DNA of 64,000 nucleotides, taken from NCBI GenBank assembly GCA_009859145.1, contig VRVR01000045.1, positions 177,940 to 241,939 of the forward strand, in the 5' to 3' direction. The translations under genes and the position numbers were made by a program. Position 1 is the first letter of the stretch. The number at the start of each line of letters is the position of its first letter. Below are positions 14,443 to 37,870 of the stretch, piece after piece. The notes under the pieces are model-generated. The model saw only the letters and a list, made by a program, of their open reading frames with translations. It was not told the origin of the DNA and ran no database searches. The stretch is from Andalucia godoyi And28. Lineage: Eukaryota; Protista; Jakobida.

Positions 14443-14969
14443 TTATCGGTAAAACGGCCGAGAACAAAGATGAAAACACAATCCAGAAAGGATGCATTAT
14501 ATATTTTTAATTTAATTTCTTTTTGCTGGAAAAAGAAGCGCAGCGAGAGGCAGACAGACAAACACACACGCAGAGATTCATAGCAGTCGCCCGCATTTCA
14601 AATCTGGAGATTGACCGTATCGAGGTTGACATGCAACCAAAAAAAGCGGCAATTTCTGTGCTCCACGGAGGGGCTTGCGAGTACACGGATGCCTGAGCTA
14701 CCCGCAACGAAATTCCCGACTTCAACTGACTTGATGGACATGCCATGCTGGGGAAAAACCGCTGTCGGAACAAAAGCGCTCTTTTCGTTCAAATACGGCT
14801 ATTTAGCGAGATTGAGGATTGTGCTGATTACCTTTCCGGGAATTTTGAAAATCGTCAAACCCGCACATTTGCAATTTGGTGAACCAGCAAAGAAGAAGAA
14901 GAAACAAGAGCTGATGCGATGATCACATGATGATTTGAAACGGGAATCTTTTAATTGGATAAGCCGCAT

Positions 14970-15881
14970 TCAGAAGGACGATCGGCGCCGATCCCTACCA
15001 CCGATCTGCGGCTGACCATTCTCAAAAAAAGTAGCGGAGTGCAGCCGAGACGATGTGCGGGGAGAAGACGGTGGGCTAGCAGGCAAGAGACAAGAGAGAC
15101 TTCCTTGACTCTGACAGGCCGTTGGTGAGATGTGACCATTCTTTGACGACCAATAGACGCCCACCACATTATGACATACTGGATTGGATCTCAAACATGA
15201 TGAAGTCCGGAACTTTGGGTTACTCAAAACGGACATCACCTGCCAGGTCATTGATAGAATCAGAACAGTGTACGTGGCGAAAACGGTTCCAGTCCGATAA
15301 CCATCCCAATAAATCACAACCAATGCAAGAGACAAGATGATATTGCACACCACGATTCCAGATGCAGTCACCCCGATGTAGAAGCATCTCCGGTTCTGAT
15401 TTGCAAGTCCCGTTTGAAGAACTGGATATGCAGCTAGAACGGCGGTGAAACTCATATCCGATTGTTCCAAGTCTTCATCAAAGTGCTCAATAATGTACCG
15501 CTCACGAAACAGAATGAGAGCACGGAGGGACAAAACCCAAAAGAGCGCAATGAAATTGATGCCCAGTACAGCTTTGTTGAAAGCAGTGAGATCTGTGAAC
15601 TGCTGATCCAGCGAGCATGTGTCACCACCATTTTCGGGGCATGACTGGGGAACGAAAACTGCGAGCAGCGTCCCCATCAAGATCATGTACAAAGAAACTA
15701 AAGACTTGAAAATGGACATTCCAAGCTGGATCATGTCTGTCCGCGTCAGCTTGGGATTTTGGGTCGTGTTCATGGGACTGCAGGAGGGCCGATAAAGGAG
15801 AATAAAGGAACGACGGTACAATACCTGTTCTGCAGCAGACTTTTTCTGTGAAGTTAGACTGTTTTGAAAAATACTGACCAA
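14970..15881 (-). CDS. Four-TM membrane protein of unknown function, resembling a family recalled from giant DNA viruses
   Basis: Four hydrophobic segments, with motif LYMILMGTLLAVFVPQSC..TCSL and NFIALF..RE.YIIEHFD. The viral resemblance is from recall, not a search. Confidence 0.6.
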   Translation of the reverse strand: MVSIFQNSLTSQKKSAAEQVLYRRSFILLYRPSCSPMNTTQNPKLTRTDMIQLGMSIFKSLVSLYMILMGTLLAVFVPQSCPENGGDTCSLDQQFTDLTAFNKAVLGINFIALFWVLSLRALILFRERYIIEHFDEDLEQSDMSFTAVLAAYPVLQTGLANQNRRCFYIGVTASGIVVCNIILSLALVVIYWDGYRTGTVFATYTVLILSMTWQVMSVLSNPKFRTSSCLRSNPVCHNVVGVYWSSKNGHISPTACQSQGSLSCLLPASPPSSPRTSSRLHSATFFENGQPQIGGRDRRRSSF

Positions 15882-16301: not shown

Positions 16302-19300
16302 GAGAGGTGCTACAAGGTCCCCAGGACGTGGAATTAAAGGAAAAGCATTGGCTTGATGCTAGCGTCAAGAGAGCATTTTATTATAAAACAGCATTTTCAC
16401 CTTAGTCCACAAAATGCAGACGACAAACACACAAGGTTTCCTGCGTTCCTGTCTATTTGCACTCCGGAGATGCACGCTGCGTACGAATAGTCATCAATTC
16501 TTCATCCTCACAGATGAACTGGTAATGCATTGGTTCGGCCCCGGCCCGTCGAGCTTTGTGCTTGGTGCGCAAACGACTGTTTGATGCTCTGCAGACGCTG
16601 CTCCATTGCACTCTCCCTTGATGCTTTGCTCATTTTCCCACCGTCTCGAAAGACCGGGACATCAGCCTCTGCTGTTGGTGGTTGGAGCACATCGGTACGA
16701 ATGTATGTCAGTGAGCATACATCAAATGCATCGCCATTCTTTCGGCAGATGCTGCTCAGCCTATGCCCAAACTCCACAGCTCCATACGCTGGAGAAATAC
16801 CATCATAGAAGCACCACTCAGCAGTCTGTTGGTTTTGGAGAGAATCAAGCATCGGTCGGACAAACGCTCCGCAGAAATGGATCTCGTTCTTCCAGAACAC
16901 CACCGAAACCAATTTGTACACAATGGAGCCAAAGGAAACTTCATAGCCTTTCTGTTCTATGAATTGTATGTCGCCCTGTGGACTAGGACGCATGCTGGAG
17001 AGCATGCCATGCTTCGGGACGGATACCATCAGGAATACCGGGCACTCAGAAAAAGAGATTGAGTCGATGTTCCAGCACACTGCACCTTTGCATTGACTGC
17101 ACGAAAGATGTCTTGCGGTCGCATTGCTCAATGTCGCCTCGAATGCCTCGCGGAAGGTCCGCGTTGCCGTCTCTGAAGCGTCTTTTGATGCGCCGACGTT
17201 GGCAGACGAGAAAGATGGTTCCAACACACAGACCAGCTTGGTAATCGGATGTCCCGAAAAACAGGTGCCTTGGATTTTGAATCGCACGAGATCCTCTGAA
17301 GGCCTCGAGCCTTCATTCGCAAAGAGACTCATTTCAAGAGCCAAATAATTCAACATTTCTCCGCGAAAGTGGCCAAAGGGTTCGATGATATCGTACACGG
17401 CAGATTTGAAAGTCTTCAATGTCGACAGGTACGATCTGAGACTGGCATGTGACAGAGACTGTGTTGCCTTCGGAAGCGGCATCATGGCTCGCTGTATGGT
17501 CGACGTGAGCAACATTTGGGCGATGGTGGAATTTCCTTTCTGAGCAGCAAGCGACTTGATGTTCCAAAGCGGCATGAGCGATAAGTTTCGGATGAACAAT
17601 TCGATGAATGTGTCCACAGCACAAGAGTTGCGATCCCATTGGAATCCCTGCACGTCGCTGAGAGAGAGCAAATTTCCGGAAGAATCGCTGCAACCTGGTA
17701 CACTAGAGCTTGGGAAGTAGGGTTGCACTTCCGTTCTTTCAATATCAACCTCCACATCTTTTGTTCTGGCTTCACCGTGCGGCGGTGAATGGCCGAGCGA
17801 TTCTGCGTTAGCGCTTGGTTGGTCTTCTGACATGTCGACAATCTCGGTTTCTTGGTCTCTCGTGAGATCTATTACATATTTTTGGAAACTCTCTTGCCTT
17901 TGAATGCTGTTTTCCATTTTCCGTGGACGCCCCGCCTTTCCTTGTGCTTTTGTCAGTGCCTTGGCAGCGGCAGATATTGTGGACGTTTTGGACTTTTCTG
18001 CCTTGGACCCATATGCAGTGAAAGGTTGCATCTTTGCCGCTGACCCCAATGTTCGGTCGCCCATTGCCGATGTGATGACCGAGTCACATTCGATGATGGC
18101 TCGCATGATGGCATCAGCCCGATTTCCAGGATGACGGATCCCCGTTCGCACCTTTTCCATGAAAATCTGAAGCATCGCTTGAGTCTCCGAAAGGGACCAG
18201 GAAGAATGTCCTGCCAATCGTGCTTCGGGGACGACGGCTTCCGGTGGGAATGGAGCACCATCCTCAAAACTGAGGCAGGAAGCTGGTGGAAGGTTGTCCA
18301 GTGGCTCTTCGCGACACAGCCTCATAGTTCCATCAGCGCCCGCATTGGAATGGCATAAACCCGCAACGTCAAACAAAGACGGATTAATCATCGTCAGCTT
18401 TTCGCGCAGATTATTCGCGTTCACGGTCTCAACTGCTCTTTCGAAGCAATGATCGTGGAACACCGATAACAGTAAATCGTCCACCACGAACGAGCGACAC
18501 AGGAACAGATGTCCCTTGAGTTGTGGCTCAAGTTCACGGAGCACGGCGGCGGCAACAATGTGCTTACAAAATGACGACCCGGCGAATCTTCGGCACGTGC
18601 AACAAATGTCAGAAATCGTGTTCTGTCCTCCATGAGACCGAACAACAATTGTTGAGACGCACCCTTGAATGCCAGTGGACGAAGGAGCAAACTCTCTTGA
18701 GACTGTCGAAACTTGGCCCAGTCCTTCCGCCATGGAATTGTCTTCGGATCGCTGCTCCGAACTGGGTCTCGTGCCCATTCTCACCTCAGCCACTACTTCT
18801 TTGGACTTTTCCCAATCATTTAAAATGTTCTGCGGCAACACCACATGAGAATTGACTCTCTCCCTGTGATGCATTACGAAATCTATCAGTTTGAAGTGAT
18901 CCCCCTTTTCCAGTTTTCGCGCAAAGTCCCCAATTCTCCGCGTAAAGGAACCACCGCAATATGCCTCTCCATGCTTAATGACGTGATGTGCAACCTCGAG
19001 AGGATTCGTGGTTCTCACTGCTGACGAGGACCAAAACACCTGGCACCAAAATTCCTTGTACATGATCGAAACATCATCTCCAAGGCCTCCAAGTGACCCG
19101 TCGGCAAGCAGCTGCGATCCCCTGTCATTCTTTTGACGGAGGTACTCTGATTTCGATTTCGTATACAGGCCAAAACGGTCCCTAAGCTTCATTAACAGCG
19201 AGCGATGATCATCATCATGCGCAGCACGGATCCACAGGTCGATTGCTGTTTTCGTTTCCGAAGAAATGTGATCTGCCACGGAAGTGTCTCTGGCATGACA

Positions 19301-20927
19301 CATGCTTTCTAAGCTGCCCACAATCGCTTGTCGGTGCTCGGGGCGAATTCGATACTTCTTGAGCCAGCGTTCCCACGCTTGCATAAAATGGAAATAGCAG
19401 AGCAAAATGTTGCAATTGCCATGCCACACATTATCAATTGCGCGTTTCTCCCGAGCATCGTTGTCAATCAAGCAATCTGCTGGAGGTGAACGATCTTCCA
19501 GGCAGGCATTGATCCAGTTGAGAAAACTTTCCACTGCAGATTCCGAATTGTCCGAGGTAATCATGCGCGCAACAACCATGGATTGCTGCTGGCCTTTGCG
19601 ATTGTTCACTACCACTCCGAGAGAGTAGCACGGCCACAGAAGCTCATTCGTGCCATGCGTACTGTCCAGCAGAATTCGCCCTTTTGGCGCAAACTTTCTC
19701 AAGATGGCAACCGACACCGCGCTATGAATAACGACTTTTAGATGCTGTGTTACGGTGGAAGGGACCGTGTCGGTAACTGCATACTTGGAGAGCACGGTTC
19801 CTCGTACCAATCCGGGTTGCGTGATCCAGCCGTACAGATCCTCAATGTCGTCACGACTGAATCGATCAGCATGATAGACATGGTTGTAGTAGATGTTGCG
19901 AATGCATTTCTTGTCTGGAACAAGCATCTTGTTCAATTCGTCGGCGAGATAGCCATTCCGACCGGCCAACACCGTGACAAGAGAGACAATTTCTTCCCGC
20001 ACGGCAGTCACACTCTTTCCCTGCAAGAGACCCTCTTTAATTTGATCGACAATAGACGGATCTAGTCTGGCATGCTTTCCGCATGATCGTATGTCGTGAG
20101 AATGAGATCCTTTGAACACCACCACGTCGACAAGATCACTGTGCAACTCGACAGTAAATCTCAAGAGCGTACACGGGCACTCTACACACGGCCGTACAGG
20201 TCTCTGACTTTCAGGTCCCGCTCTCGACTGTCGGTTTACCGAACAATCGTAGGAACGTCGAAAGGTGTCCCTGTTTCGCTTGGCTTTCCAGCATTCGCCA
20301 AAGATCCAGCGCTCAAAGGACAACAACTTGTCAACATTCCATGGACTCCCAACATATGCAATTCGACAGTTTTCTCGTGCAACGAACGAGTCCCACAGTT
20401 CTGAAGATGAAGTTGAGCCATCACCTGTGTCCGGGGAGTCAAGCACTCGAAAGCTCGGCATCGTCATTCTGGATATTCCTCGTTCTAGCAGAAGGCCTTC
20501 CATCAATATATCCAGAGGCCTCGGTGGTGAAAATAGATGTGACGCTGGATTCTCGGAGAAGTGCACATTGTCGCGGCCCAAGACACGGACTTTGGTAAGG
20601 AACGCTGCATCAGAGTTATAGCGAACGACATTCTTGGGAAGCCAAGAAAAGGCATGGCCGTGCGAAACCAGATCAGCATGAAGGTCATTGACGGTTTTTA
20701 TCCTTTTTGCAGAAGGAGAACTAAACTGGCTTCCATCATCATCTTGACCATCTTCGGCAACATCGCCAGCCATAAAAAGCATTCTTTAAAACAAAAAGGA
20801 GGTGAGAGATGGGAGGGAGAAGAGGCGAGTTCGTAACAGTCTATAGAGAAAAAAATGCGCGGGAAGCCGACGGCCAGTATCAAGCTTTGCGTCAATCCAA
20901 TGTCCTGGGGACCTTGAAGTATCTCTC
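16302..20927 (-). mobile_element. Mutator-like (MULE) DNA transposon, ~4.6 kb, with ~80-bp imperfect TIRs
   Basis: TIRs at ~16302-16382 and ~20848-20927 share a perfect 15-bp core CAAGGTCCCCAGGAC (16313-16327 and revcomp 20902-20916) and begin GAGAG. They enclose the transposase ORF. No perfect TSD. Confidence 0.8.
16508..20782 (-). CDS. MULE transposase with WRKY/GCM1-like Zn finger, DDE domain, SWIM finger and C-terminal papain/USP-like protease domain
   Basis: YDC...CVECPC...HSH; LLDSTHGTN (D1); CLIDND...LLCYFHFMQAW (D2 plus CxxH); TTNPLEVAHHVIK (E); CCTC..FCKH (SWIM); WDRNSCAVDTF...IHFCG...CFYDG (Cys/His/Asp). Confidence 0.9.
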   Translation of the reverse strand: MLFMAGDVAEDGQDDDGSQFSSPSAKRIKTVNDLHADLVSHGHAFSWLPKNVVRYNSDAAFLTKVRVLGRDNVHFSENPASHLFSPPRPLDILMEGLLLERGISRMTMPSFRVLDSPDTGDGSTSSSELWDSFVARENCRIAYVGSPWNVDKLLSFERWIFGECWKAKRNRDTFRRSYDCSVNRQSRAGPESQRPVRPCVECPCTLLRFTVELHSDLVDVVVFKGSHSHDIRSCGKHARLDPSIVDQIKEGLLQGKSVTAVREEIVSLVTVLAGRNGYLADELNKMLVPDKKCIRNIYYNHVYHADRFSRDDIEDLYGWITQPGLVRGTVLSKYAVTDTVPSTVTQHLKVVIHSAVSVAILRKFAPKGRILLDSTHGTNELLWPCYSLGVVVNNRKGQQQSMVVARMITSDNSESAVESFLNWINACLEDRSPPADCLIDNDAREKRAIDNVWHGNCNILLCYFHFMQAWERWLKKYRIRPEHRQAIVGSLESMCHARDTSVADHISSETKTAIDLWIRAAHDDDHRSLLMKLRDRFGLYTKSKSEYLRQKNDRGSQLLADGSLGGLGDDVSIMYKEFWCQVFWSSSAVRTTNPLEVAHHVIKHGEAYCGGSFTRRIGDFARKLEKGDHFKLIDFVMHHRERVNSHVVLPQNILNDWEKSKEVVAEVRMGTRPSSEQRSEDNSMAEGLGQVSTVSREFAPSSTGIQGCVSTIVVRSHGGQNTISDICCTCRRFAGSSFCKHIVAAAVLRELEPQLKGHLFLCRSFVVDDLLLSVFHDHCFERAVETVNANNLREKLTMINPSLFDVAGLCHSNAGADGTMRLCREEPLDNLPPASCLSFEDGAPFPPEAVVPEARLAGHSSWSLSETQAMLQIFMEKVRTGIRHPGNRADAIMRAIIECDSVITSAMGDRTLGSAAKMQPFTAYGSKAEKSKTSTISAAAKALTKAQGKAGRPRKMENSIQRQESFQKYVIDLTRDQETEIVDMSEDQPSANAESLGHSPPHGEARTKDVEVDIERTEVQPYFPSSSVPGCSDSSGNLLSLSDVQGFQWDRNSCAVDTFIELFIRNLSLMPLWNIKSLAAQKGNSTIAQMLLTSTIQRAMMPLPKATQSLSHASLRSYLSTLKTFKSAVYDIIEPFGHFRGEMLNYLALEMSLFANEGSRPSEDLVRFKIQGTCFSGHPITKLVCVLEPSFSSANVGASKDASETATRTFREAFEATLSNATARHLSCSQCKGAVCWNIDSISFSECPVFLMVSVPKHGMLSSMRPSPQGDIQFIEQKGYEVSFGSIVYKLVSVVFWKNEIHFCGAFVRPMLDSLQNQQTAEWCFYDGISPAYGAVEFGHRLSSICRKNGDAFDVCSLTYIRTDVLQPPTAEADVPVFRDGGKMSKASRESAMEQRLQSIKQSFAHQAQSSTGRGRTNALPVHL

Positions 20928-23113: not shown

Positions 23114-26100
23114 TTACCGGTTTCGACTCCTTAACCGACGTTGCTGCCGAGAGACATGCTGTTCACCAGCAGGAACAGACTCCTCTGGAACTTGCACAGC
23201 ACGGGTAGTTCCAGATTCTTCCTTACTCCACAGGTGTAAATATGAGTGTCGGCTTTGGCTGTTGGGACTCGTCAGGAAATCAACATCGACATCCTGCCCC
23301 ATTGCTTTCCATCCGGTTCCCAGCATGGAAAAGCGAGTTCTGTCATTCACATCCTGTACAGAGGACTCGGAAGCATTTGTAACAATTGAAACCTCCTCAA
23401 TCAGCAATGCATCGTTCTCGATCGTTTCGACAGCGGAATTCTTTTCGTCGCCATCCTTTGGCATATAAGGAATTCCAATTGCATACAACTTCAGTTCATC
23501 CAATTCTCCATTTGCATTGGGAAAAATTTCAAACCTGCAAAAGCTTTTGAAGTTTGGAGAAGCCAACGAACTGAACGTACCGTTAACATCCCATTCCTTG
23601 TGAAACATATGTGACAGTGCCCATAAGCACGTGACTGTGTTTCCAATTATCCCTCCGACGACAGCAATAGCCAGACCACTGAGAAGTAGCCGAACAACCT
23701 TTTCCGCTCCAATAAAAGAAACAGAACAATAAATGATCAATTGACCGAGACATTTTCTCAGGATTGAGCAAAAGACATGAATTTTGTTATCCTCACTCCA
23801 CTTCAAAGACTCGTCCTCTCTGCTGACGCGCATTGGAAGAAGCATGATGAGCATTTCGAAAATGAGTCCATCCAATGGAAAGACAGGTTCTGCTACATGA
23901 CCGCACGTTGTAACGACAGAGCATACGATTTTCTGCCTTAGGAAGTAGATCCAAGCGAGGTACCCCTCAATGTTCACCCCTTGATTAATAATCAAGTGAC
24001 ATGCAAACGACGCAGTTAACGGGCAAATCACGCAAACTACTTGATAATGATGCTCTTTTTTCATCTTCCGAAGAAGAACAAGACAAGAAACAATGCAAAT
24101 GGCAATCAGAACGGGAATTGAGAAAATAATGTGGAAGATGCCGAAAACTTTTGACAACAATGCGGATGCAATAGCAGCGATTGAAATAACTCCTGAACGC
24201 CATTTCATCGCAGATATTCGCTCCATTGAAGAAATTCGCCGTAGTGAAAACGAGAGGAACAATCTTGCAGAACATATTAAAAACACACAAATACCTACTA
24301 AAGAGCCACCTATCATCATTGGAGGTGCAATGTGGCGAACCACTCCGGACATTGCGTAAGATGCCGGGAATGCTACAAAAATGTAACTACAGACACCGAA
24401 AAACGAGTGCAAGAGAATCAAGTAAACAACATGGAGATCGATTGTGAACCTTCGATGGAATGATACCAGTGTCAACGCTGTTGCAATTAAAGCACCGATG
24501 ACCGCTGGGACGGAAGTCAGTACCGCAAAAAGTAGATCCGTTCGAAGAACTTCTCCCTTTCCGCGATCGAGTTCAAATACGCCCCGAACACCACTGGCAA
24601 TTAACAGATACGATATCCCCATCACTAGCGTATACGTTGGCTGAATTAAAGGTAAAGCAAGCAACAACCACGTATGCACTTCGGAGCAACATTTCTTTGG
24701 AAACAATTGAAATTTTGTTGAGCCCTTAAACCTCTTGAGAGTTAGATGTTCCCTGTCTCCATTCAAACTTGAAATGTAATGACACTTCGAATCGCCGAGT
24801 TGTGCACAGTTAGTGGAATTGGCAACCGACGAGTCGGAGAATTGTGAAGATCTGAGTATCCAATCGAATTCGAATTCTTCCAAGAGACGATGTGTGGGAT
24901 GCATAAACGAACCACCACCACCACAAGTGACAAAATGGCATTGAGCTGTGGATTCCTCACTTGGCCTGGCACTTGTACTTCCTGCTCGGAGTAGTGCTTC
25001 GTAGCGAGAATAATGATGTACATCTCCAGCGACAACTGCATCAATATGCACATCGTAAAGGGGATTTGACGTACACCAACAAAGAGTTTGAAAGAAACTC
25101 TCTAGATGCGTATTGTAGTATGAAAACTTCTCCAAGTCATCCCTTGAGCTAAGGTCATTTTTCATACGAACCGATTCTCCATCTTTTCCAATGAGCCAAA
25201 ATGGGCTATGCACGAATACCACAACATGTATGATTCGGAAGCCTGGGTTTGCTTCGGGTTGGTTTCCCTTTGATCTCCTTCTTTTCCTTTCGTTGTCGTC
25301 CAGAGTTTTCCGAAGATCATGGGCTGCACAAACCTGTTCTTCTGAAATGTCCCAGTTCAAGTCCATGTCAAGACCAATAAAATACAGGTTATTCAAGACT
25401 TCTAATATCCAGTACGTGCGGTCCTGTTCCATAGTAAATCTGGGAGCCATGTTAGGTTTGCCAGCTTCCTTTTCTGGAGATGGAAAGAAGTCTGTCCGGC
25501 AAACAAACTTCTCAAAGACCTTGGGACCAGCAAAATGGTCATGATTCCCAGGAATAAAGAAGGCCTTTCGATTCTTTGATGAAGTTGAATTTTCGAAACC
25601 ACCAAAAGCGCTTCTGAAAGGATCTTCCATGCGGGAAAAGTTCTCTTCGGACAAATAGGGATAACACAGATCGCCTCCAAAAATAACAATATCCGCTCCA
25701 GAAAGGTTCTTCTTTGAATCAAGTTCTTCTGTGTGAGGAAACGATTCACTCAACAAACAGTTGAGACCGCATTTGTCATCGCTTGTTTGCCTGTTTTGCA
25801 ACTCCAATGTATCAGCAAGGACCAATGCAGCAATGGCAAAACTTGGTACAAACCCATCACCAGTGTCTGCGACGAAATCGATAACAATCTTACTTGGCGG
25901 CTTCGCATTTCCTTTGCTGACAGCAGTCATGGCAGGTTGCAGATTGAAGTTCACCAACCCAGATTGAGGAGAAGATCGATGCTGTTCGATGATCTTCGAC
26001 CAAAACGCTTGAAACCCTGTGAGAGTCAGAGTCGTAGGATCAAACCACAAGCTCATGGAACGCTTGCGAGGTAGATTTTCCACCACTGAGGTTCCAAAAA

Positions 26101-27571
26101 TAAGGGTTAAAAACACCAAGAAGATGCAATTGAGAAGCGAAGAAACGTCAGGTTCGACATCAAGGTAGGATATCCCCTGACAGCCTAGAGTCTGTTCTTC
26201 AGGAAGAGCCCAGTTATGACGCAATCTCAAACGATCATGCTTTCCACTCCAATAACCTCCCGTACCATCTGTGATATCCGTCAGCATGCGTAACATAATC
26301 AAAAACATTGCAAACATCAATGCAATGGCGAAACTGAGCCTTCGTGACAGAGATTTCTTGGACTTCAGACTAGGAAACAGAGAAAAGAGCTCCGATAATC
26401 CCAAGAAAGAGAGTCCCATAGCGCAATTCCGTTCAAAAATGGACAGCGTAAGGAAATACCACGATGAAGACATCCAGAATGAGAGGATAGCAACTAGTAA
26501 ATGAGGAACCATTATGAATAGTACACCAATGACAGTCCACTGGTACTTCCTCACGCTCATCACTTCTATGAGGGATTCTGCTTCGAAGCTTACAAAGCAA
26601 ATCACATAGATAGTTGACAAATACAAATCAAGAACCAAAGCAAAAAAGAAACAAAGTGCCATGAGCAACAAGCGAAATCGCGAATACTGAAGTATGTTTT
26701 CTTTTTTTTCTTCAGATTTTTCGAGCTGACGATTTCTCCAAACGTTAAAAAGAATAAAACAAACACAAAAGGCATTTGGAATGTCAATGCTTAGCCGCAG
26801 CCCGTGACAGAACAACAAGCCAACGATGCTACTCAGAGCTGGAGTCAGTTCGGGTTTCAGAATAGCAAAGAACGCCATGAACATCAGAACTACCAAACTC
26901 AACCAATGGTGTAACAAAAGGAACATTCCAGACCAGAAATCATGACAACCGTGTCTAACAGTTTCATTCGAAATGGAAGTGTATAGAAGGGCGAACCAGA
27001 TCCCTCCCAGTCGTTCATTCCCAGAAGGCTTCGTTCCTCGCCACAGAAAAGCATCTGCATGAAGGACCCCGAATATCCAGGCAACATTAGATAAAAATGC
27101 TGCAAATTGTACATGTTCTTGATTGAAATCAACAATTCCAAAGTAACCGCTAATATTCTTCAAGGATTGTGAAAGAAGTTTGTCTTGCAGCACTGCTGTT
27201 GATAAAGAGACAGCCCTGAACTGTTTGACTGCTTCTGCCAATGGGACAAAACTGCAGTTGTCCTTTGATACTTGAGGAAGAGAATTCCACTCACGGATCT
27301 GCCTTGTATCATTATAAGAGAAGGAGACGAGGGGATTCAGATCAGCATTGTAGACAAATTCAGCAACATGACGCTGATTGAACAAGCTTTCATTGACCCG
27401 CATAACCTCATTTCTATGAGTGACATCGGAAAGGTCCATTTTCCTCACCGAGTACGAATGCCACAGCATTGGTTCGTGTTTGGCCGCCAGCGCCACATAA
27501 ACCAAGCAAATACAGATCATCGGCGCCCATATGACGAATTTGAGAGAAAAACTCTCTTGCGAAGGTGACAT
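23114..27571 (-). CDS. Multi-pass membrane calcineurin-like metallophosphoesterase
   Basis: Motifs DFVADTGDG, FGGDLCYP, IPGNHD, FVHSP, AGDVHHY and CGGGGSFMHPTH, with many TM segments on both sides. Confidence 0.88.
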   Translation of the reverse strand: MSPSQESFSLKFVIWAPMICICLVYVALAAKHEPMLWHSYSVRKMDLSDVTHRNEVMRVNESLFNQRHVAEFVYNADLNPLVSFSYNDTRQIREWNSLPQVSKDNCSFVPLAEAVKQFRAVSLSTAVLQDKLLSQSLKNISGYFGIVDFNQEHVQFAAFLSNVAWIFGVLHADAFLWRGTKPSGNERLGGIWFALLYTSISNETVRHGCHDFWSGMFLLLHHWLSLVVLMFMAFFAILKPELTPALSSIVGLLFCHGLRLSIDIPNAFCVCFILFNVWRNRQLEKSEEKKENILQYSRFRLLLMALCFFFALVLDLYLSTIYVICFVSFEAESLIEVMSVRKYQWTVIGVLFIMVPHLLVAILSFWMSSSWYFLTLSIFERNCAMGLSFLGLSELFSLFPSLKSKKSLSRRLSFAIALMFAMFLIMLRMLTDITDGTGGYWSGKHDRLRLRHNWALPEEQTLGCQGISYLDVEPDVSSLLNCIFLVFLTLIFGTSVVENLPRKRSMSLWFDPTTLTLTGFQAFWSKIIEQHRSSPQSGLVNFNLQPAMTAVSKGNAKPPSKIVIDFVADTGDGFVPSFAIAALVLADTLELQNRQTSDDKCGLNCLLSESFPHTEELDSKKNLSGADIVIFGGDLCYPYLSEENFSRMEDPFRSAFGGFENSTSSKNRKAFFIPGNHDHFAGPKVFEKFVCRTDFFPSPEKEAGKPNMAPRFTMEQDRTYWILEVLNNLYFIGLDMDLNWDISEEQVCAAHDLRKTLDDNERKRRRSKGNQPEANPGFRIIHVVVFVHSPFWLIGKDGESVRMKNDLSSRDDLEKFSYYNTHLESFFQTLCWCTSNPLYDVHIDAVVAGDVHHYSRYEALLRAGSTSARPSEESTAQCHFVTCGGGGSFMHPTHRLLEEFEFDWILRSSQFSDSSVANSTNCAQLGDSKCHYISSLNGDREHLTLKRFKGSTKFQLFPKKCCSEVHTWLLLALPLIQPTYTLVMGISYLLIASGVRGVFELDRGKGEVLRTDLLFAVLTSVPAVIGALIATALTLVSFHRRFTIDLHVVYLILLHSFFGVCSYIFVAFPASYAMSGVVRHIAPPMMIGGSLVGICVFLICSARLFLSFSLRRISSMERISAMKWRSGVISIAAIASALLSKVFGIFHIIFSIPVLIAICIVSCLVLLRKMKKEHHYQVVCVICPLTASFACHLIINQGVNIEGYLAWIYFLRQKIVCSVVTTCGHVAEPVFPLDGLIFEMLIMLLPMRVSREDESLKWSEDNKIHVFCSILRKCLGQLIIYCSVSFIGAEKVVRLLLSGLAIAVVGGIIGNTVTCLWALSHMFHKEWDVNGTFSSLASPNFKSFCRFEIFPNANGELDELKLYAIGIPYMPKDGDEKNSAVETIENDALLIEEVSIVTNASESSVQDVNDRTRFSMLGTGWKAMGQDVDVDFLTSPNSQSRHSYLHLWSKEESGTTRAVQVPEESVPAGEQHVSRQQRRLRSRNR

Positions 27572-29243: not shown

Positions 29244-29789
29244 ATGATGTGCGTCGCTCGTCTGTTCGGTCTCTCCACGGATCATGATGTGATCCACGGT
29301 CAGTTGTCTCTATTAAAAGAAAACCTAGAAGAACTCCGCAAGCGATGTCGAATGACTTCAAAGATCCACTACAATACGAGCGAGTTTTACGGATTGATGG
29401 AGCACGGACTTGGCCTATTGAGTGTTGTTGGAATTGCGCTTTTGCAGTCTCCCTGGATTGATAAAACATCTCTTGCCAAAAAACGGGCAGTTGCATTTGT
29501 GACCGCTACAGCAGCGTTAGCGTATGTCAAACCTCAGGGCTGGGGAAGACAACACCATTCTGCTGGTGTTAGCTACGGTGCATTAGAACGCAAGGCTCGT
29601 GAACTGGAAACCGATATTGATTTTTTTATTGGGAGACAGCCAACAGCAAGCGACCGGCATGATATGGCTGATCGAATACGTATATTGTGGGACTCTAAAG
29701 AGAAGTTGGACATGAATTCTCCCATCGCTTCCGAAGTCTTCAAATCGTATACTGCACGACAGTTAAAAGGCAAATCCTTGGATAAATGA
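29244..29789 (+). CDS. SLATT-like two-TM effector protein
   Basis: N-terminal helix with H, TM1 (HGLGLLSVVGIALL), TM2 (AVAFVTATAALAYV), then GRQHHSAGVSYGALERK matching the SLATT H..AG..Y..L.R motif, and a late NSPI motif. Confidence 0.72.
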   Translation: MMCVARLFGLSTDHDVIHGQLSLLKENLEELRKRCRMTSKIHYNTSEFYGLMEHGLGLLSVVGIALLQSPWIDKTSLAKKRAVAFVTATAALAYVKPQGWGRQHHSAGVSYGALERKARELETDIDFFIGRQPTASDRHDMADRIRILWDSKEKLDMNSPIASEVFKSYTARQLKGKSLDK

Positions 29790-30180
29790 GCAATCTATTG
29801 TTGATAAACCGATAGGGTCTTCGTTATAAGTTTCAAAGATTCTTCAGTTATTCATATAAAATACAAATCTTATTATGAAACCAAAACCTTCCTTGTACGT
29901 CAGAGCTCAGAAGTCCGTACAGCAAGAATCGTTGTTATGATTCTCTTGGCCAGTCTTGAATTTGAAGGCCTGTCTAGCAATTTTATCTGCTAAAAGATTA
30001 TGGCATTAGGAATTGACTCGAAATTATCATGTATTAGCAAGATGAACGTATTGAAAGTCACAAAAAGACTCTGCAGCGATGAACTGCCCACTTTCTTGTT
30101 GTACGCCCAAATCGGTGGGTCCACAGATCATTGAAGAGTTCTGTACGGCATGCCAATTACCAACCCTCGTATACGAAACT

Positions 30181-31104
30181 TTAAGACAGATCTTCAACTG
30201 CCCACCGCAAAGGAACTTTTGAAGAGAACACGATGCGATCATGGACATACGGATCCAGAAAATGTCCTTTGCCGATCAACTGGTTCAGCTGTTCGATGAT
30301 AGCATTAATTTGCTTATGATTGAATTTAGACCGCGTTTGCAAGAGCACTTCCGCCACAACAAAGCGAATGACAAAACTCGATACATTGTGACTGTTCGCC
30401 CAGTCATGTTTGGCGCTTATGTACTTCACTGCACGAACAAGGTCCCGATAGCCTAAAATCTTGTTAGAAGGATCTCTTGCAAATTCGCGATCCAAATCCA
30501 TCACTATGCGCATATCTTTCATCGTTGGATTTGCTTCCCATTCAGTGCCATTGGGAATCACGTGGTGGTGATCACCGTTCTCATCTTTGTACATGAAGGC
30601 GGGAATCACATCATAATTCCGCTTGGGATGTCCCATGCCTTCAATGCGTGCTCCGCGAGAAGTAGGCGAAACTTTGTGAACGCTATCCCACTTTTTCATG
30701 ACTTCGCACACAATGCTATGCATCCAGGAAGCAATAGACCCGCTCGATAAAGGCTTAAAACGATGATCGCCATCCAGGTTACTGTTAGAACCAGACGGTC
30801 CTCGGAGAGGCATATTTTCCCACTTCAACCCATTACCGTTTAATACAACATACACATCAATATCATGCACAACTCGATTTGTCAGACGATGAAAAAGGCT
30901 TCCATGTTTCGAAAAGGATGCGTCATCGGAGGGAGACAAGAGGGCTTTTCCGTCTGCGAGGATGGCATTTCGAATTTGCGCCAACAGCCACTGACGCTGT
31001 CGTTTCGCTTGTCTGGTATTGTCTCGATTGGCGATCACGGGAGAAGAGGTCACAAGATGGTAGACATCTTCGCTCAGCTTCTTCTGGCTGATGCTTGCTT
31101 GCAT
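30181..31104 (-). CDS. cGAS/DncV-like nucleotidyltransferase (CD-NTase/SMODS family)
   Basis: Pol-beta triad HGS-x11-DID...YDVIPAF. Also HVIPNGTEWEANP (cf. Y.IP...W..TNP), RDLVRAVKY (cf. LVRLLK.W), VSSFVIR (cf. L.S..lE) and FLDPY. Confidence 0.85.
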   Translation of the reverse strand: MQASISQKKLSEDVYHLVTSSPVIANRDNTRQAKRQRQWLLAQIRNAILADGKALLSPSDDASFSKHGSLFHRLTNRVVHDIDVYVVLNGNGLKWENMPLRGPSGSNSNLDGDHRFKPLSSGSIASWMHSIVCEVMKKWDSVHKVSPTSRGARIEGMGHPKRNYDVIPAFMYKDENGDHHHVIPNGTEWEANPTMKDMRIVMDLDREFARDPSNKILGYRDLVRAVKYISAKHDWANSHNVSSFVIRFVVAEVLLQTRSKFNHKQINAIIEQLNQLIGKGHFLDPYVHDRIVFSSKVPLRWAVEDLS

Positions 31105-32151: not shown

Positions 32152-33513
32152 ATGCCCTCAACAATCACCTGGTGCACGATCGGCGCACCCATTGGCATCA
32201 TCATTGCCTCTGTAGTCTTGGTACCATTGCAGTGTACGTATCCCAGCGACAATCTGTCGTGTCAAGATGCATCCATTATTGCGTCCATCGTCTTCCCACT
32301 GACGCTGTGCGTTTGTTCGCTGCTTTCTGGGAAGAAGAAATACAGAGAAGTGTCACTGATATGCGCCTTTCTATTCGCTCTCGGGACATTTTCGTATGCC
32401 ACCACAACTGGAGACTCAACTCTATCCACCGGGCTTCTTGGGGCGTGGGCGGCGATGATTGCGTTTCTGTGGTCCGTCCATCAGTATTTTGAAGACCAGA
32501 GGAAGGAACAGGAGCAGAAAATGGAAGAAGACAGAGAGCGTGCCATAGCGAATTTGCAAGCATTCTCTCGCCGCTTATCTGAGCAGCAGATCGTTTACCG
32601 GATTGTAGAGTTGTTGAGCCATGATCACATCGATAAGTGGAATGAAGACGAGATCCTGTCGATTATTAGCCACATTCCGCATGATCATTCTTTTTCCGTT
32701 TCCGCGTCAACTCGAAAGAGTATCATAGTGTCTTTCATTTCTGACTTTGGGAAATTATGCCAAGAGGCAAAAGACATCGAAGAGCCGTTGTATGGATCAT
32801 TGCTGAACTTTGCCTATCCGTTATTCATGCTTCTCGAAGTACGGATATATCCGCCACCAGCGATCTTGTCGCACATCCTTGCATTCTGGTCCCTTATCAA
32901 AGGAAATGATCATTTGTCGCAAGGCCACATTAGGGCTGCATTTTGCAGGATGCGGCAGCAGGATTCTGTGGTTCTGGTCGACAAATATACTGACATTTAC
33001 CAGACGTTGGTAACCAAACTGTTCACCGAAGATGGAGAGAAGTTTTTCTGGTGGTTTGTCGACAAAGAACATCTCCTTGGTCATATAGTAGTCCAGACAC
33101 GGCAGCACCGACTGAATGATGAGCATTCATGTGAATTGAAGAAGAGATTGGGGATTCCCAACGCAGTGACCATTCCAAAGCCCGATCCGTATGATTCTGA
33201 GAATGGAGACATCCACGCTGTAGAACCCTTTTCTCAGGTAATTTATTCCATCATCAACGAACTTCCTGGAGACCTAGTGCGAAATTGCGCACGTGCGAAA
33301 TGTGGTATCTTCCCTCCATTGGCCCGGTGGGTGATACGCCGCTACCTAGCGAGGACAGCAGGCGACTTGGCGAACTTTGCGCACACGGAATTGACAATAC
33401 ACGACAGATTCCGTTGGGATGAAAACAGAATCAGGCGCATCCAGAAGGAATCGAACGATCACGATATCAAACGCACATTTCGATCCTTGTTTTTTCTCAA
33501 CGGCACAACATAG
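32152..33513 (+). CDS. Membrane protein with four N-terminal TM helices, a coiled coil and a helical cytosolic domain of unknown family
   Basis: 453-codon ATG ORF with four hydrophobic segments in aa 7-110, then EDQRKEQEQKMEEDRER. Stop lies 14 bp from the stop of the convergent caspase-helicase. Confidence 0.75.
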   Translation: MPSTITWCTIGAPIGIIIASVVLVPLQCTYPSDNLSCQDASIIASIVFPLTLCVCSLLSGKKKYREVSLICAFLFALGTFSYATTTGDSTLSTGLLGAWAAMIAFLWSVHQYFEDQRKEQEQKMEEDRERAIANLQAFSRRLSEQQIVYRIVELLSHDHIDKWNEDEILSIISHIPHDHSFSVSASTRKSIIVSFISDFGKLCQEAKDIEEPLYGSLLNFAYPLFMLLEVRIYPPPAILSHILAFWSLIKGNDHLSQGHIRAAFCRMRQQDSVVLVDKYTDIYQTLVTKLFTEDGEKFFWWFVDKEHLLGHIVVQTRQHRLNDEHSCELKKRLGIPNAVTIPKPDPYDSENGDIHAVEPFSQVIYSIINELPGDLVRNCARAKCGIFPPLARWVIRRYLARTAGDLANFAHTELTIHDRFRWDENRIRRIQKESNDHDIKRTFRSLFFLNGTT

Positions 33514-33527
33514 TAAATCGACTATAG

Positions 33528-36500
33528 CTATGGCACCCACGACTTCGGCTTCTTTGAATTCTGCAGTGAAGTTGATGGACCAGGCCTTTTGAGGGAGCCT
33601 GTCTCGGGTTTGGGGATAGAGGATTTGACACTTCCTGAAGCGGTGGCATTTGCTGCATGGGAAGATGAAGATCCCGTATTGGATGAGGATTTTTGAGTGT
33701 TGCCCTTGGGCTTTGCTGGAGACGCCGACGATGACTCACCAGTATTCTCGATATAAAGATCCTGAATTTGTTGTTCGCTGGTCACGTTGTTCTGACGACA
33801 ATCCGCCCATAGCATCCTAGAACGCAACTCGACAACAGCAGACGTGGACACATCCCGAGGCCGCAGTCCAATTGGAACACTAGTCCCGGATGTCGCGGAA
33901 GACGCAGAAGCAGTCTGTGAAGACCTCCATTGTTGAATGATAAACTCACGGCCATTTTTCTTAAGAGTGGGTGAGCAAGAAAGGAAGAACTTCACGCACT
34001 CTACGGGCATTCCGTATTGTAGTTGAAGCATACTCATATGAAAACGTTCCGCAGAAGGCGTCGAACCTCGGATACCTTGAAACACCTGCTTTGCTACGCG
34101 GAAAATATCCCATAGCATGTTGCTCAGCGGTGCCCATCCATTATTCACGACTCGGAAGCCAAGACCCGTTACAGTTATTATGTCTCTGACGGACATTCCT
34201 TTCGTCCAACATATCATAAACAAGAGAAAACGTCTCTTATTCTCAGCTTCATCTTTAGGGACGCTAGCAGGAATAGCCGCAGAAGAAATGGTCTTAATGG
34301 TTCTCAAAAGATCTGTGTCGTTCTCGAGTACGACTAACCACAATTCGTCTGTAATAGGAGGTGAGGGGGTTGCTGGGTGAAATTGCTTCCAAAAACCATC
34401 TGTTTTCCCCTTTTCATTCTTCCGTTTCCCTGAGATCGAACAGAAAACGCCTAGAATGAATGGAATCGACGAAATATCAATAGTTTGATCTTGATCATTG
34501 AGAATTGTAAATAGAACCTTGATGTTCTTGCGAATTTTCCGTATGTCATCCAATTCTAGACGTCTGCTGGCGACAAACATACGACCAATGGAAGTCAAAC
34601 AAACACGATCCTGTTTCTCATCAACAAGACACTGCTTTTTCATTTCCATCAGGACATCTCGAAACATGTCATCCTTGGAACAGCAATGGAAGCCAAAAGT
34701 GCTCTTGAATGCGGCTTCCAGAGAGTCAATAGAGACACGGTCCACATCGAATGCGGAAAGGAGCAAGCCCACGAACCTGGTTTGATCTGACATAGTGCTT
34801 AATGAAGAAGCCACCACCGGTTCAGGCGGCTGATCATGATAACTATTCAGATAGTGTTCCTTTTTGTCCTTTCCCGTGACAGCCATGATCGCATGACCAG
34901 CAGAATAAAATGAGTCGGAAGTGAACTTAGATCGAGCAACAGGTGGGTCAATATGCCCCGGACGTCCTGCTCGGCCGATGAAGTTCAGATACTTGGACAC
35001 AGGAAAGAAAGAGGAATCTTGGAGTAACATTTCATCCAAGACAACAACAGAAGTACTGGTGTTCACACCCTCGGCGAGAGAAGTCGTGCACACAACAGCT
35101 TTCAGTCCATCGTGCTTCATGTCCAGCAATGATTCAACCCACTCCCTCTCGTGCATCGTCATATCTGCGCAATGAGTACCTATTCCATACTTCACAGATT
35201 TTGTCATAGCCTCACCATATGGTGTCATCGCCGTCCCTGCAATCGTCGCACATTGAGGGTCTTTAATACGAAGATATCCTTTGATAAGAGAATTGTAGAA
35301 CGGAGCATGTTCACCAGCACTGAGATGAGCGAAACACTCCAAAGTGGCTTCAACAATCGGGAAAATATCCGCGATTCGCCCAACCACAAATAATATCGGA
35401 CCCTTTTTCTGTGCTAACAGAGAGACAATTATCTTCGCAGAACGAATGGCGACATCATGCACACGAATCTTCCATTTGAAAATAGCATTGAGCACAGGAG
35501 TGTTGCCCGGATTCATAGAAATCGAAGGAATCGACGGATTCAAACTCTTCGCTACTTTCGGCGACACGATATCAAAAACGTATTCAGAGATGATCCTGCG
35601 TTCAGACGAGGGTGTTATGCTCACAACAAATTCTTTGGATTCCAACCAGCGAATCAAGGACGTGCTTGTTTCCAGCATGCCAGACAGCAGTAGCTTTTGG
35701 ACTGTCGATTTCTCCATAATCTTGGTTAGCACAACATCTACTATCTTCCCTCGTTCCTTGATCCCAATGAGAACAAATTCGTCAGCAACGACTAAGGAGA
35801 GCCCCCCAAGGAAGTTCATATTCGAGCTCATGATAGAGTAAAACATCTCATACGTCATAACACACACATCGAAACGAAGAAAAGATGCAGATGAATCTTG
35901 ATCAGGGAAATCGCCAGTGCACAGAACAATCCTCGACAATGGAAAATGCGGCTTTGTGTACTCTTGTAGCAATCCGTAATATTGGTTGGCCAACGCTTTC
36001 AAGGAGCACAAGATGACGACACGCCCTTTCATGGACAGCGTAGCACAAATACGAATCAAAGCGCAAAAAGTCTTCCCTTCTCCGGTTCCCGCACATATCA
36101 AACGATTCTTCCATTGCTTGGAGTCAACAGTAAGAACCTCTTTTAGAATCTCATCCTGGAAACTCTTCAAAGAATGACGTTTCGAAAATAAATATTGATG
36201 AAGAAGCGCATCCAGCATCCTCTTATCCACTCGAATTTGAGAGAGAAAGGTTTGCATGCTCGCACCAGCGCGAAAGGAAGGAACCGCTGACGAGGGAGAA
36301 GGTGTACGAACAGTTTGGGCAAGAAGGTTGGAACTGATCGTTCTCAACGTCTTAGACATGCACAGTTGAAGGTAAGGTGGATCCTTGATAGCAGCCTTTC
36401 CCAAGCTAACGTTCACGAAGGTGTCCGTAAAGACGCCACCACCAGGACAATATTCATATGCATGTTCGTTCCCGGAAGCGCCAACCCAAACAAACGATTT

Positions 36501-36941
36501 GCATTGTTGAATTACAGACTCCAGCGACTTTGAAGAGCAGCAATCCAATAATATCCAAACGTCTTGTAGAAGCTTGCAATCCTCCAAAAGATCTTTCAAC
36601 CAGTATACTCCAGAAACATCACTTTGGTCTGCGTTGAAGTCATGGCAGGCTAAACCAACCCGTTCTTCTGTGGGAAGAGCCTGCACAACAAGATGACCGG
36701 CAAAATACAGCAAAAGCCCACCATTCTTGTGGTTAGCACATAACTCCTGCAGTTTGTGGCGACACGTTGATGACGTTGCACCCTCATCCACAACAAGCTC
36801 GAATGACCCACGTGCATTGTCTTGGAAAAGGGCAAGCATCTTTTGAGCATCGAGGGCAGCGGAGGGAAGTTCTGTTGCATTGAAGGAGCTGCGAGACAAG
36901 CGAGAAACGCCGACGAACAGCGCAGATTCGGTTCGTTCCAT
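33528..36941 (-). CDS. Caspase-like (Peptidase C14) protease fused to a Ski2/Hel308-like SF2 helicase
   Basis: Protease: ALFVGV...LPSAALDA, YFAGH (His), LLDCC (Cys), AYEY..GGVFT. Helicase: AGTGEGKT, SLKALANQ, MTYEM, VADEF, ERG, LLSGM, GIGTH, CTTSLAEGVN, IGRAGRPG. Confidence 0.88.
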   Translation of the reverse strand: MERTESALFVGVSRLSRSSFNATELPSAALDAQKMLALFQDNARGSFELVVDEGATSSTCRHKLQELCANHKNGGLLLYFAGHLVVQALPTEERVGLACHDFNADQSDVSGVYWLKDLLEDCKLLQDVWILLDCCSSKSLESVIQQCKSFVWVGASGNEHAYEYCPGGGVFTDTFVNVSLGKAAIKDPPYLQLCMSKTLRTISSNLLAQTVRTPSPSSAVPSFRAGASMQTFLSQIRVDKRMLDALLHQYLFSKRHSLKSFQDEILKEVLTVDSKQWKNRLICAGTGEGKTFCALIRICATLSMKGRVVILCSLKALANQYYGLLQEYTKPHFPLSRIVLCTGDFPDQDSSASFLRFDVCVMTYEMFYSIMSSNMNFLGGLSLVVADEFVLIGIKERGKIVDVVLTKIMEKSTVQKLLLSGMLETSTSLIRWLESKEFVVSITPSSERRIISEYVFDIVSPKVAKSLNPSIPSISMNPGNTPVLNAIFKWKIRVHDVAIRSAKIIVSLLAQKKGPILFVVGRIADIFPIVEATLECFAHLSAGEHAPFYNSLIKGYLRIKDPQCATIAGTAMTPYGEAMTKSVKYGIGTHCADMTMHEREWVESLLDMKHDGLKAVVCTTSLAEGVNTSTSVVVLDEMLLQDSSFFPVSKYLNFIGRAGRPGHIDPPVARSKFTSDSFYSAGHAIMAVTGKDKKEHYLNSYHDQPPEPVVASSLSTMSDQTRFVGLLLSAFDVDRVSIDSLEAAFKSTFGFHCCSKDDMFRDVLMEMKKQCLVDEKQDRVCLTSIGRMFVASRRLELDDIRKIRKNIKVLFTILNDQDQTIDISSIPFILGVFCSISGKRKNEKGKTDGFWKQFHPATPSPPITDELWLVVLENDTDLLRTIKTISSAAIPASVPKDEAENKRRFLLFMICWTKGMSVRDIITVTGLGFRVVNNGWAPLSNMLWDIFRVAKQVFQGIRGSTPSAERFHMSMLQLQYGMPVECVKFFLSCSPTLKKNGREFIIQQWRSSQTASASSATSGTSVPIGLRPRDVSTSAVVELRSRMLWADCRQNNVTSEQQIQDLYIENTGESSSASPAKPKGNTQKSSSNTGSSSSHAANATASGSVKSSIPKPETGSLKRPGPSTSLQNSKKPKSWVP

Positions 36942-37424: not shown

Positions 37425-37870
37425 CCCTTTGAGCGAGCTTGAGCTGCTTGCCCTTTGAGATTTCGAGCTTGCTTGTCTCTTTGAGATTGAGCTGCTTGTC
37501 TCTTTGAGAATGAGCTGCTTGTCCCCTTTGAGATTGAGCTGCTTGTCTCTTTGAGAATGAGCTGCTTGTCCCCTTTGAGCTGAGCTTCTGGACCCTTTGA
37601 GCTGAGCTTCTGGTTCCCTTTGAGATTGAGCTGCTTGTCCCCTTTGAGATTGAGCTGCTTGTCCCCTTTGAGATTGAGCTGCTTGTCTCTTTGAGAATGA
37701 GCTGCTTGTCCCCTTTGAGATTGAGCTGCTTGTCTCTTTGAGAATGAGCTGCTTGTCCCCTTTGAGATTGAGCTGCTTGTCCCCTTTGAGATTGAGCTGC
37801 TTGTCCCCTTTGAGATTGAGCTGCTTGTCTCTTTGAGAATGAGCTGCTTGTCCCCTTTCAGATGAGCTGA
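37425..37870 (+). repeat. Tandem array of 23/24-bp units (GAGATTGAGCTGCTTGTCCCCTTT), about 18 copies
   Basis: Directly visible. 23-bp (..GTCTCTTT) and 24-bp (..GTCCCCTTT) variants partly alternate. Confidence 0.95.

Follow-up and report, generated by a model that had tools for sequence, protein, structure and literature searches.

A CD-NTase and SLATT_4-like gene pair of probable CBASS origin in the jakobid Andalucia godoyi

Can a bacterial defence operon be taken over by a eukaryote as a whole, its synthase and its effector remaining side by side? How bacterial immune systems gave rise to eukaryotic ones is an open question, and most known cases are single genes that were parted from their original partners. 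The question is raised by a locus of the jakobid Andalucia godoyi And28, located in a stretch of 64,000 nucleotides of contig VRVR01000045.1 (positions 177,940 to 241,939, hereafter the window). There, a gene for a cGAS/DncV-like nucleotidyltransferase (CD-NTase, or cyclase) lies next to a gene for a small protein with two hydrophobic, putatively transmembrane segments (2TM) that resembles the SLATT_4 family, an arrangement recalling the type I cyclic oligonucleotide-based antiphage signalling system (CBASS). We consider it highly probable that a CBASS-derived pair of a CD-NTase and a SLATT_4 protein is resident in eukaryotes, and likely that this pair is a type I CBASS operon taken from bacteria as a unit, which now constitutes a module of nucleotide signal and membrane effector. 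This interpretation is supported for sequence, structure, synteny and origin, while the function of the module is what we infer.

The larger of the two open reading frames (ORFs), of 307 aa, is predicted to code for a CD-NTase with an intact GS/DxD/D active site. Its AlphaFold2 model, built on an alignment of 12 sequences, displayed a predicted local distance difference test score (pLDDT) of 85.6 and a predicted template modelling score (pTM) of 0.79. When this model was compared with the PDB using Foldseek, the top matches were CdnC from E. coli (6p80), CdnD from P. aeruginosa (6p8j), mouse and human cGAS, CdnE, MiD51 and CdnG, with E-values of 2e-8 to 1e-6, a probability of 1.00 and template modelling (TM) scores of about 0.6 (0.5-0.65 among the top 50). 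These matches support a nucleotidyltransferase core of the pol-beta type followed by a C-terminal helical domain, i.e. the cGAS/DncV fold. Since CD-NTases head the list, an identity as a tRNA or poly(A) nucleotidyltransferase is not supported. The 12-sequence alignment shows no variation at G68, S69, D81 and D165 and next to none at D83, and the PADLOC oligonucleotide-cyclase profile PDLC00802 matches residues 26-277 with an E-value of 4.8e-14. A profile search of PDB sequences gave weak hits (E 0.01-0.09) with the motifs in the correct register, GS...DID being aligned with SGS...DIDV of E. coli CdnC (6p80), while DVIPAF falls on ADVIPCF in 6e0m, an E. coli CD-NTase. The translation also contains VIPNGTEWEANP and DLVRAVK.

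Other searches returned little for this enzyme. No match was obtained from NCBIfam, and nothing was found by phmmer among PDB sequences; the Pfam scan of both ORFs returned chance matches only (Rubredoxin, DASH_Hsk3). A homolog in another locus (L002) matches the NCBIfam family CBASS_cyclase_a with an E-value of 1.2e-6, far under the cutoff. No more than eleven relatives were recovered by a word-indexed search of 5.8 billion proteins, and all of them come from metagenome or read-archive assemblies.

The 181-aa partner matches the PADLOC profile of CBASS 2TM effectors (PDLC00712) over residues 22-164 with an E-value of 2.7e-10, and the NCBIfam family SLATT_4 (NF033632) with an E-value of 4.8e-9 and 36 bits, the curated cutoff being 55. 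Three of its four eukaryotic relatives also match SLATT_4 (E 3e-10, 1.5e-4 and 8.9e-4) and one does not; SLATT_4 and CBASS-2TM profiles are matched by four of five eukaryotic members. In the AlphaFold2 model (pLDDT 79), residues 14-67 and 77-130 form a long hairpin of helices, and two more helices come after it. Its Foldseek matches in the PDB are generic helical bundles only (best E 0.11), and those in BFVD are proteins of giant viruses that carry a SLATT annotation (E 2.6e-4 and up). The hydropathy maxima lie at residues 51-67 (1.81) and 77-98 (about 1.05), and two hydrophobic segments are found in every 2TM member except P0013, which has the second only. Among the conserved motifs, the N-terminal helix carries ELRKRCRMTSKIHYN, the part behind the second hydrophobic segment HHSAG..YG..ER, and the C-terminus YT..L...LDK.

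An earlier note on this DNA, made from its letters and translations, had proposed a CD-NTase tail-to-tail with a SLATT-like 2TM protein about 390 bp away. Both ORFs are present at the coordinates given there, uninterrupted and convergent, the gap measures 391 bp, and all the CD-NTase and SLATT motifs quoted were found in the translations. The assignment as a CD-NTase is borne out by fold, catalytic residues and PADLOC cyclase profile; that as a SLATT-like 2TM protein agrees with the SLATT_4 match (albeit under the curated cutoff), the PADLOC effector profile and the viral SLATT structures. The two stop codons converge on the spacer, which presumably holds the 3' untranslated regions of both genes, and therefore these cannot form one transcript. 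Only one copy of each family occurs within the window, no flanking or terminal repeats surround the pair there, and GC content, GC content at third codon positions (GC3) and codon choice of both ORFs lie inside the span seen among the other genes of the window. We regard the pair as real, rather than a chance association, because each ORF separately matches its CBASS component profile in PADLOC and because the adjacency recurs in four other loci.

Indeed, the pair is kept in five of the eight informative loci, window included; two relative orientations occur, and the flanking genes differ from one locus to the next (Table 1). The short loci L005, L006 and L008 could not be judged for pairing and were left out of this count. 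The synteny in relatives on which the earlier note had made its reading depend is seen in L002, L004, L007 and L013. An adjacency that recurs while orientation and flanks change is the pattern to be expected if selection favoured linkage or if the two genes moved together, and not from chance. The L007 pair has on one side a Ku70 gene (Ku_N, Ku, Ku_C and SAP domains) and on the other a gene for a protein kinase. The cyclase of this locus retains the GS and DID motifs, and its first roughly 60 residues were found in none of the upstream frames; either its N-terminus is truncated or a small intron was missed. In L002, a 181-aa ORF downstream of the cyclase was tried as the 2TM homolog and rejected, BLASTP showing no similarity; the true homolog is a divergently oriented ORF of 169 aa.

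The origin of the pair was approached through its bacterial relatives. When 1.84 billion representative proteins were searched exhaustively with the profile, 139 matches to the cyclase family were returned, of which about 30 are close members; beyond a gap followed proteins of about 330 aa with Pfam SMODS or Mab-21 domains. In an unrooted maximum-likelihood tree the eukaryote-like family forms one clean split (100/100) and the bacterial-type matches form two further clean groups. The family has so far been seen only in eukaryote-like contexts, the nearest bacterial-type proteins being distant (profile E about 1e-17, about 27% identity). A pattern-based scan of 185,579 prokaryotic species genomes, of a kind that misses distant relatives, found only L008 (JARLIE010000217.1), a contig of 3.9 kb and 57% GC binned in a 'Candidatus Paceibacterota' metagenome-assembled genome (MAG). 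Its cyclase, of which only the C-terminal two thirds are present, resembles most closely the eukaryote-like copy of L006; the contig is probably eukaryotic DNA that was misbinned, or else a pseudogene.

The best profile scores among bacterial relatives belong to a clade linked to SLATT_4 (P0040, P0041, P0046). In all four loci examined (L009, L010, L011 and L012) a SLATT_4 gene sits immediately upstream of the cyclase on the same strand, overlapping it or within a few bases, in bacterial, defence-type contexts (FUR, an AlwI-type restriction-modification system, LexA; GC 28-40%). These bacterial neighbours match SLATT_4 with E-values of 1e-25 and 6e-40 (90-137 bits), and an hhalign comparison of the eukaryotic 2TM family with them gave an E-value of 6.7e-5 over 105 columns, the motifs C-x4-K-I-H-Y-N, H-x2-A/G-x2-Y and a C-terminal Y-T being common to both. 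The best-scoring bacterial relatives thus form operons of SLATT_4 followed by CD-NTase. A single transfer of such an operon, later converted into two eukaryotic genes, is the simplest account, and since other, uncultured eukaryotes also have the two genes side by side, the bacterial immune module was probably taken over whole.

Plasmids, when searched for the SLATT_4-linked clade, yielded relatives at 30% identity or less only. A larger bacterial clade (P0049), common on Bacillus cereus plasmids, carries an S-4TM effector downstream of the cyclase, and P0049 is 68% identical to a B. cereus plasmid protein (L015, NZ_CP040343.1). The best plasmid match of the window cyclase, at 27% identity, lies on a Proteus plasmid (L016, NZ_CP047640.1), also with S-4TM downstream. 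In L016 the CD-NTase and the 'S-4TM family putative pore-forming effector' have a type I restriction-modification system on one side and a gene for a TnsD transposase on the other.

Table 1. Position and arrangement of the features described, numbered within the window or within the locus named.
Locus	Feature	Position	Strand	Remarks
Window	2TM / SLATT_4-like ORF	29244..29789	+	181 aa; two hydrophobic segments; putative membrane effector
Window	CD-NTase ORF	30181..31104	-	307 aa; cGAS/DncV-like nucleotidyltransferase
Window	Spacer	29790..30180	.	391 bp, A+T-rich, separates the two convergent stop codons; read directly
Window	Catalytic motif GSLFHRLTNRVVHDID (G68-S69-x11-D81-I-D83)	30856..30903	-	translation and alignment
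Window	YDVIPAF strand with third catalytic acidic residue D165	30595..30615	-	translation and alignment
Window	SLATT-type motif HHSAGVSYGALER in the 181-aa ORF	29553-29591	+	translation
L004 (Logan)	Cyclase and 2TM genes			convergent, gap about 126 bp; cyclase 52%, 2TM 38% identity to window
L007 (JGI metagenome)	Cyclase and 2TM genes			convergent, gap about 150 bp; cyclase 36%, 2TM 28% identity to window
L007	Cyclase	2485-2800
L002 (ENA)	Cyclase and 2TM genes			divergent, gap about 185 bp; cyclase 44%, 2TM 42% identity to window
L002	2TM homolog	2940-3449		169 aa
L002	Rejected candidate	5562-6107		181 aa
L013 (JGI)	Cyclase and 2TM genes			divergent, gap about 580 bp
L001	Cyclase paralogs and LRAT-domain genes	1757-2317, 10001-11158, 13312-13806, 14092-15660
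L003	Cyclase; neighbouring gene	409-1365; 1440-4877		convergent, gap 75 bp
L014	Cyclase; neighbouring gene	6001-6894; 6932-8998		convergent, gap 38 bp
Window	MULE transposase and SWIM zinc-finger ORF	16508-20782	-	1424 aa
Window	Membrane protein with calcineurin-like phosphoesterase domain	23114-27571	-	1485 aa; multi-pass
Window	Membrane protein	32152-33513	+	453 aa; N-terminal hydrophobic region
Window	DEAD/Helicase_C protein	33528-36941	-	1137 aa
Window	Tandem array of a 24-nt unit (GAGATTGAGCTGCTTGTCCCCTTT)	37435-37869		18.5 copies, 87% match

By analogy with type I CBASS, the following working of the pair may be proposed. A minimal operon of SLATT_4 and CD-NTase would have entered a eukaryote from bacteria as a unit, would have acquired the composition of its host, and would have been split into separate transcription units, convergent or divergent depending on the lineage and still adjacent. 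Upon an infection or stress cue, the CD-NTase would make a cyclic di- or oligonucleotide from nucleoside triphosphates; the SLATT protein, responding to this signal, would oligomerise in a membrane and permeabilise or depolarise it, and the damage would lead to arrest or death of the infected cell, i.e. abortive infection. The nucleotide product, the trigger, the sensing of a ligand by SLATT, the target membrane and the antiviral role are the parts of this scheme that we infer, and that the pair is an active antiviral suicide circuit has, in our judgement, about an even chance. A wider proposal, which we advance tentatively and with the balance tipping slightly against it, is that the family represents a fourth independently acquired lineage of eukaryotic CD-NTases, beside OAS, cGLR and eSMODS, which would have arrived along with its pore-forming SLATT effector and would still operate in protists as a minimal but complete abortive-infection circuit, probably directed against giant viruses.

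Several points weigh against a CBASS-derived, working module. The EukProt model of the cyclase (P0001) has only 210 aa, starting at M98 and lacking the GS/DID active site, and if it corresponds to a real transcript the enzyme would be dead. Residues 1-97 are conserved across all homologs of the 12-sequence alignment, and for this reason the full ORF of 307 aa is the better model. The CD-NTase has no match to Pfam SMODS (PF18144) or Mab-21 (PF03281) at E-values up to 1, Pfam reports no SLATT family for the 181-aa protein, and its SLATT_4 score is the sub-cutoff one given above. The second hydrophobic segment is weak, with Kyte-Doolittle values of 1.0-1.5 in the eukaryotic 2TM proteins as against 1.65-2.5 in the bacterial ones; membrane insertion, predicted from hydropathy, is accordingly likely and not assured. 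To our knowledge, neither the mechanism of SLATT effectors nor nucleotide sensing by a protein made up of SLATT alone is understood even in bacteria. The cyclase occurs without a 2TM gene in L001, L003 and L014, despite several kb of context, showing that the coupling is not obligatory. The unrooted tree does not prove a sister relation to the SLATT_4-linked bacterial clade, which is proposed because of the profile scores and the shared partner and not from topology. Finally, the antiviral or cell-death function attributed to the pair is derived from the analogy drawn above.

The three loci in which the cyclase stands alone have neighbours of their own. The metagenomic contig L001 (135 kb) carries two cyclase paralogs near genes for LRAT-domain proteins (of NlpC/P60-type acyltransferase or phospholipase-like character) with hydrophobic C-terminal tails; these proteins may be an alternative effector partner in that locus. 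The cyclase of L003 converges on a gene for a Laminin_G_3/RasGAP-like protein of 1145 aa, and that of L014 on a gene for a 688-aa protein with no family match.

The alternative that survives best, although we regard it as unlikely, accepts a CBASS-derived pair and takes the adjacency for a mere leftover of recent co-transfer, or of joint movement by a mobile element, the two genes having no joint function or being in decay. It would account for the flanking genes, which differ at every locus as they would for a moving unit, for the solitary cyclases, and for the cyclase N-termini of L007 and L008, which were not found as open frames; a MULE transposase-like gene also lies 9 kb from the pair in the window. 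It is at odds with the state of the genes, as both ORFs are open and have kept their catalytic and SLATT motifs despite divergence to 28-52% identity, and with an adjacency that has outlasted a change of orientation, a composition and codon use that are fully host-like, and the lack of terminal repeats around the pair.

A viral source appears improbable. SLATT genes are widespread in polinton-like and giant viruses (PMC12220804; 10.1101/2025.10.09.676808), and the best structural matches of the 2TM protein are giant-virus SLATT proteins, one of them from Bodo saltans virus, whose host belongs to Discoba. An inserted virus of either kind, in place of a direct bacterial donor, might have supplied the pair or still include it, with SLATT serving a viral role such as membrane perforation at entry or exit. 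However, capsid, packaging ATPase, polymerase and integrase genes were not detected beside the pair in the window. Pattern-based scans of 2.9 million IMG/VR contigs, which miss distant relatives, returned none for either protein, and neither matched PHROGs. Moreover, viral SLATT genes have no reported CD-NTase partner (PMC12220804; 10.1101/2025.10.09.676808). For the partner family, SLATT_4 (about 175 aa), and for the cyclase alike, the best-scoring relatives lie in a single type of bacterial operon.

We consider it very improbable that the cyclase is a non-immune enzyme of housekeeping or developmental signalling, as proposed for relatives of the Mab21/MiD51 type, with an unrelated 2TM neighbour. 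MiD51 and Mab-21-type proteins do occur among the structural matches, and some relatives have no 2TM neighbour, but MiD51-type proteins are inactive and the window cyclase has an intact catalytic triad. The rarity and patchiness of the family in the profile search are typical of conflict genes and not of housekeeping ones, and its repeated adjacency to the very effector family found beside its bacterial relatives would be hard to explain on this reading.

The window itself bears on the remaining alternative. Those of its proteins that an exact look-up found are EukProt entries. It encodes a P-type ATPase of the ENA type with eukaryotic N- and C-terminal domains, as well as a TrkH transporter and leucine-rich repeat (LRR) proteins; scans for tRNA genes and Rfam families found no match in the window. 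Among named proteins, the ATPase is closest to two from Andalucia godoyi (59% and 47% identity), and kinetoplastid proteins come next. This places the source organism in Discoba, probably among the jakobids, in keeping with the long genes without introns reported from A. godoyi (PMC7050145). The eukaryotic context claimed in the earlier note is upheld by the EukProt proteins, the ENA-type ATPase, the MULE/SWIM and LRR genes and the host-like composition and codon use. Bacterial contamination or a chimeric assembly, suggested by the bacterial prey on which jakobid-type protists are grown and by the one relative in a Paceibacterota MAG (L008), is the least probable explanation of all, given eukaryote-type genes with matching GC, GC3 and codon use on both sides across 64 kb, a convergent layout with a spacer unlike the overlapping co-directional bacterial operons, the distance of the nearest bacterial-type proteins, the position of the L007 pair between Ku70-SAP and protein kinase genes, and the GC content and L006 affinity of L008, probably misbinned. 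None of these four alternatives fits as well as a type I CBASS operon acquired as a unit.

Further features of the window deserve description in their own right. The MULE/SWIM gene, situated about 9 kb from the pair, represents a Mutator-like element, either active or domesticated. The DEAD/Helicase_C protein is encoded 2.4 kb from the cyclase and matches many PADLOC models of HamB, the Hachiman helicase (best E 2e-16), while neither Pfam nor the PDB offers a match for the N-terminal 250 residues. The gene could be another one of the conflict type, or it could simply encode a Ski2-like helicase. A defence island around the pair was considered and found unsupported, PADLOC matches being restricted to this HamB-like helicase and lacking in the other neighbouring ORFs. 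The tandem array is intergenic, downstream of the start of the helicase gene. The two membrane proteins that flank the pair, of 1485 and 453 aa, have no other family match and no PADLOC match.

If the wider proposal of a fourth CD-NTase lineage with a complete abortive-infection circuit is true, the pair would be the first eukaryotic pathway of nucleotide second messengers that ends in a SLATT membrane effector, instead of STING or RNase L, and direct evidence for the domestication of whole bacterial defence operons, beyond single genes. Its synthase and executioner halves are still adjacent in eukaryotic chromosomes after considerable divergence and changes of orientation, and SLATT effectors would gain a second, independent biological setting. 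The pair offers a testable two-protein system in which to study the logic of CBASS in a eukaryotic cell, the signal used and the membrane attacked by SLATT. The 181-aa ORF is missing from the protein collection searched, including the EukProt source proteome. Proteome surveys would miss or misjudge pairs such as this one, with a misannotated enzyme and an unannotated effector.

Among known systems, the closest are the bacterial type I CBASS operons with SLATT effectors, of which those of EcCdnF04/F05-SLATT6 protect E. coli from phages (bioRxiv 10.1101/2023.05.21.541620). Like these (e.g. L010 and L011), the window pair comprises two protein families only, without Cap2/Cap3 or HORMA/TRIP13, and PADLOC scans of the neighbouring ORFs found no further CBASS component. 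The proteins are of similar size (about 175 aa for one, about 310-360 aa for the other) and have their catalytic and SLATT motifs in common. Unlike them, it resides in a eukaryotic nuclear genome, is highly diverged and has weaker hydrophobic segments, and in place of an overlapping co-directional operon its genes and those of its relatives are separate units 126-580 bp apart. The operon organisation of type I CBASS is thus not found here, the genes being convergent (window, L004, L007) or divergent (L002, L013). The type I CBASS of Bacillus cereus and Proteus plasmids has a CD-NTase that the family profile recovered and that belongs to the same broad group; it differs in having a 4TM effector downstream of the cyclase, instead of SLATT_4 upstream.

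On the effector side, the SLATT proteins known from algae (e.g. EMIHUDRAFT_256646), from giant viruses and from polinton-like viruses share the fold family according to structure comparison, and they document the presence of SLATT domains in genomes associated with eukaryotes. They are described as stand-alone genes, usually of 200-290 aa, for which no CD-NTase partner has been reported (PMC12220804; 10.1101/2025.10.09.676808), and the roles proposed for them are viral entry or membrane remodelling, not nucleotide-activated suicide. On the synthase side, bacterial-like CD-NTases termed eSMODS were identified in scattered protists in a EukProt survey and ascribed to horizontal gene transfer out of bacteria (Culbertson and Levin 2023, PMC10732462). 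Although the window cyclase is likewise a bacterial-like CD-NTase of a protist, eSMODS were reported from other lineages (Amoebozoa, choanoflagellates, Ancyromonadida and a sponge) and are nested in bacterial clade D (D04) (PMC10732462). The window cyclase comes from Discoba, and its family forms its own 100/100 split in the tree of the family and its bacterial-type matches. Pfam SMODS (PF18144), the top domain of eSMODS, is not matched by the window protein, and no linked effector is mentioned for eSMODS (PMC10732462).

The closest eukaryotic parallel is found in choanoflagellates, whose genes for the cGAS-like receptor (cGLR) and for STING are adjacent, 'operon-like' and independently transcribed, lying 178 bp apart in M. 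brevicollis, an adjacency that has been read as a trace of the joint horizontal acquisition of a CBASS-like locus (bioRxiv 10.1101/2025.09.04.674280). This case shows that such linkage can persist in eukaryotes, and therefore the principle is not new. The novelty claimed in the earlier note accordingly stands only in part: a linked synthase and effector in a eukaryote had already been described in 2025, while our literature searches turned up no account of a CD-NTase paired with SLATT in any eukaryote. Both cases associate a cGAS-like synthase with an adjacent effector in a unicellular eukaryote. In choanoflagellates, biochemically validated, the synthase belongs to the cGLR superfamily and the effector STING is a dedicated cyclic-dinucleotide receptor; in A. 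godoyi, on the evidence of sequence and predicted structure, the synthase belongs to a separate bacterial-like family and the effector is a small SLATT protein.

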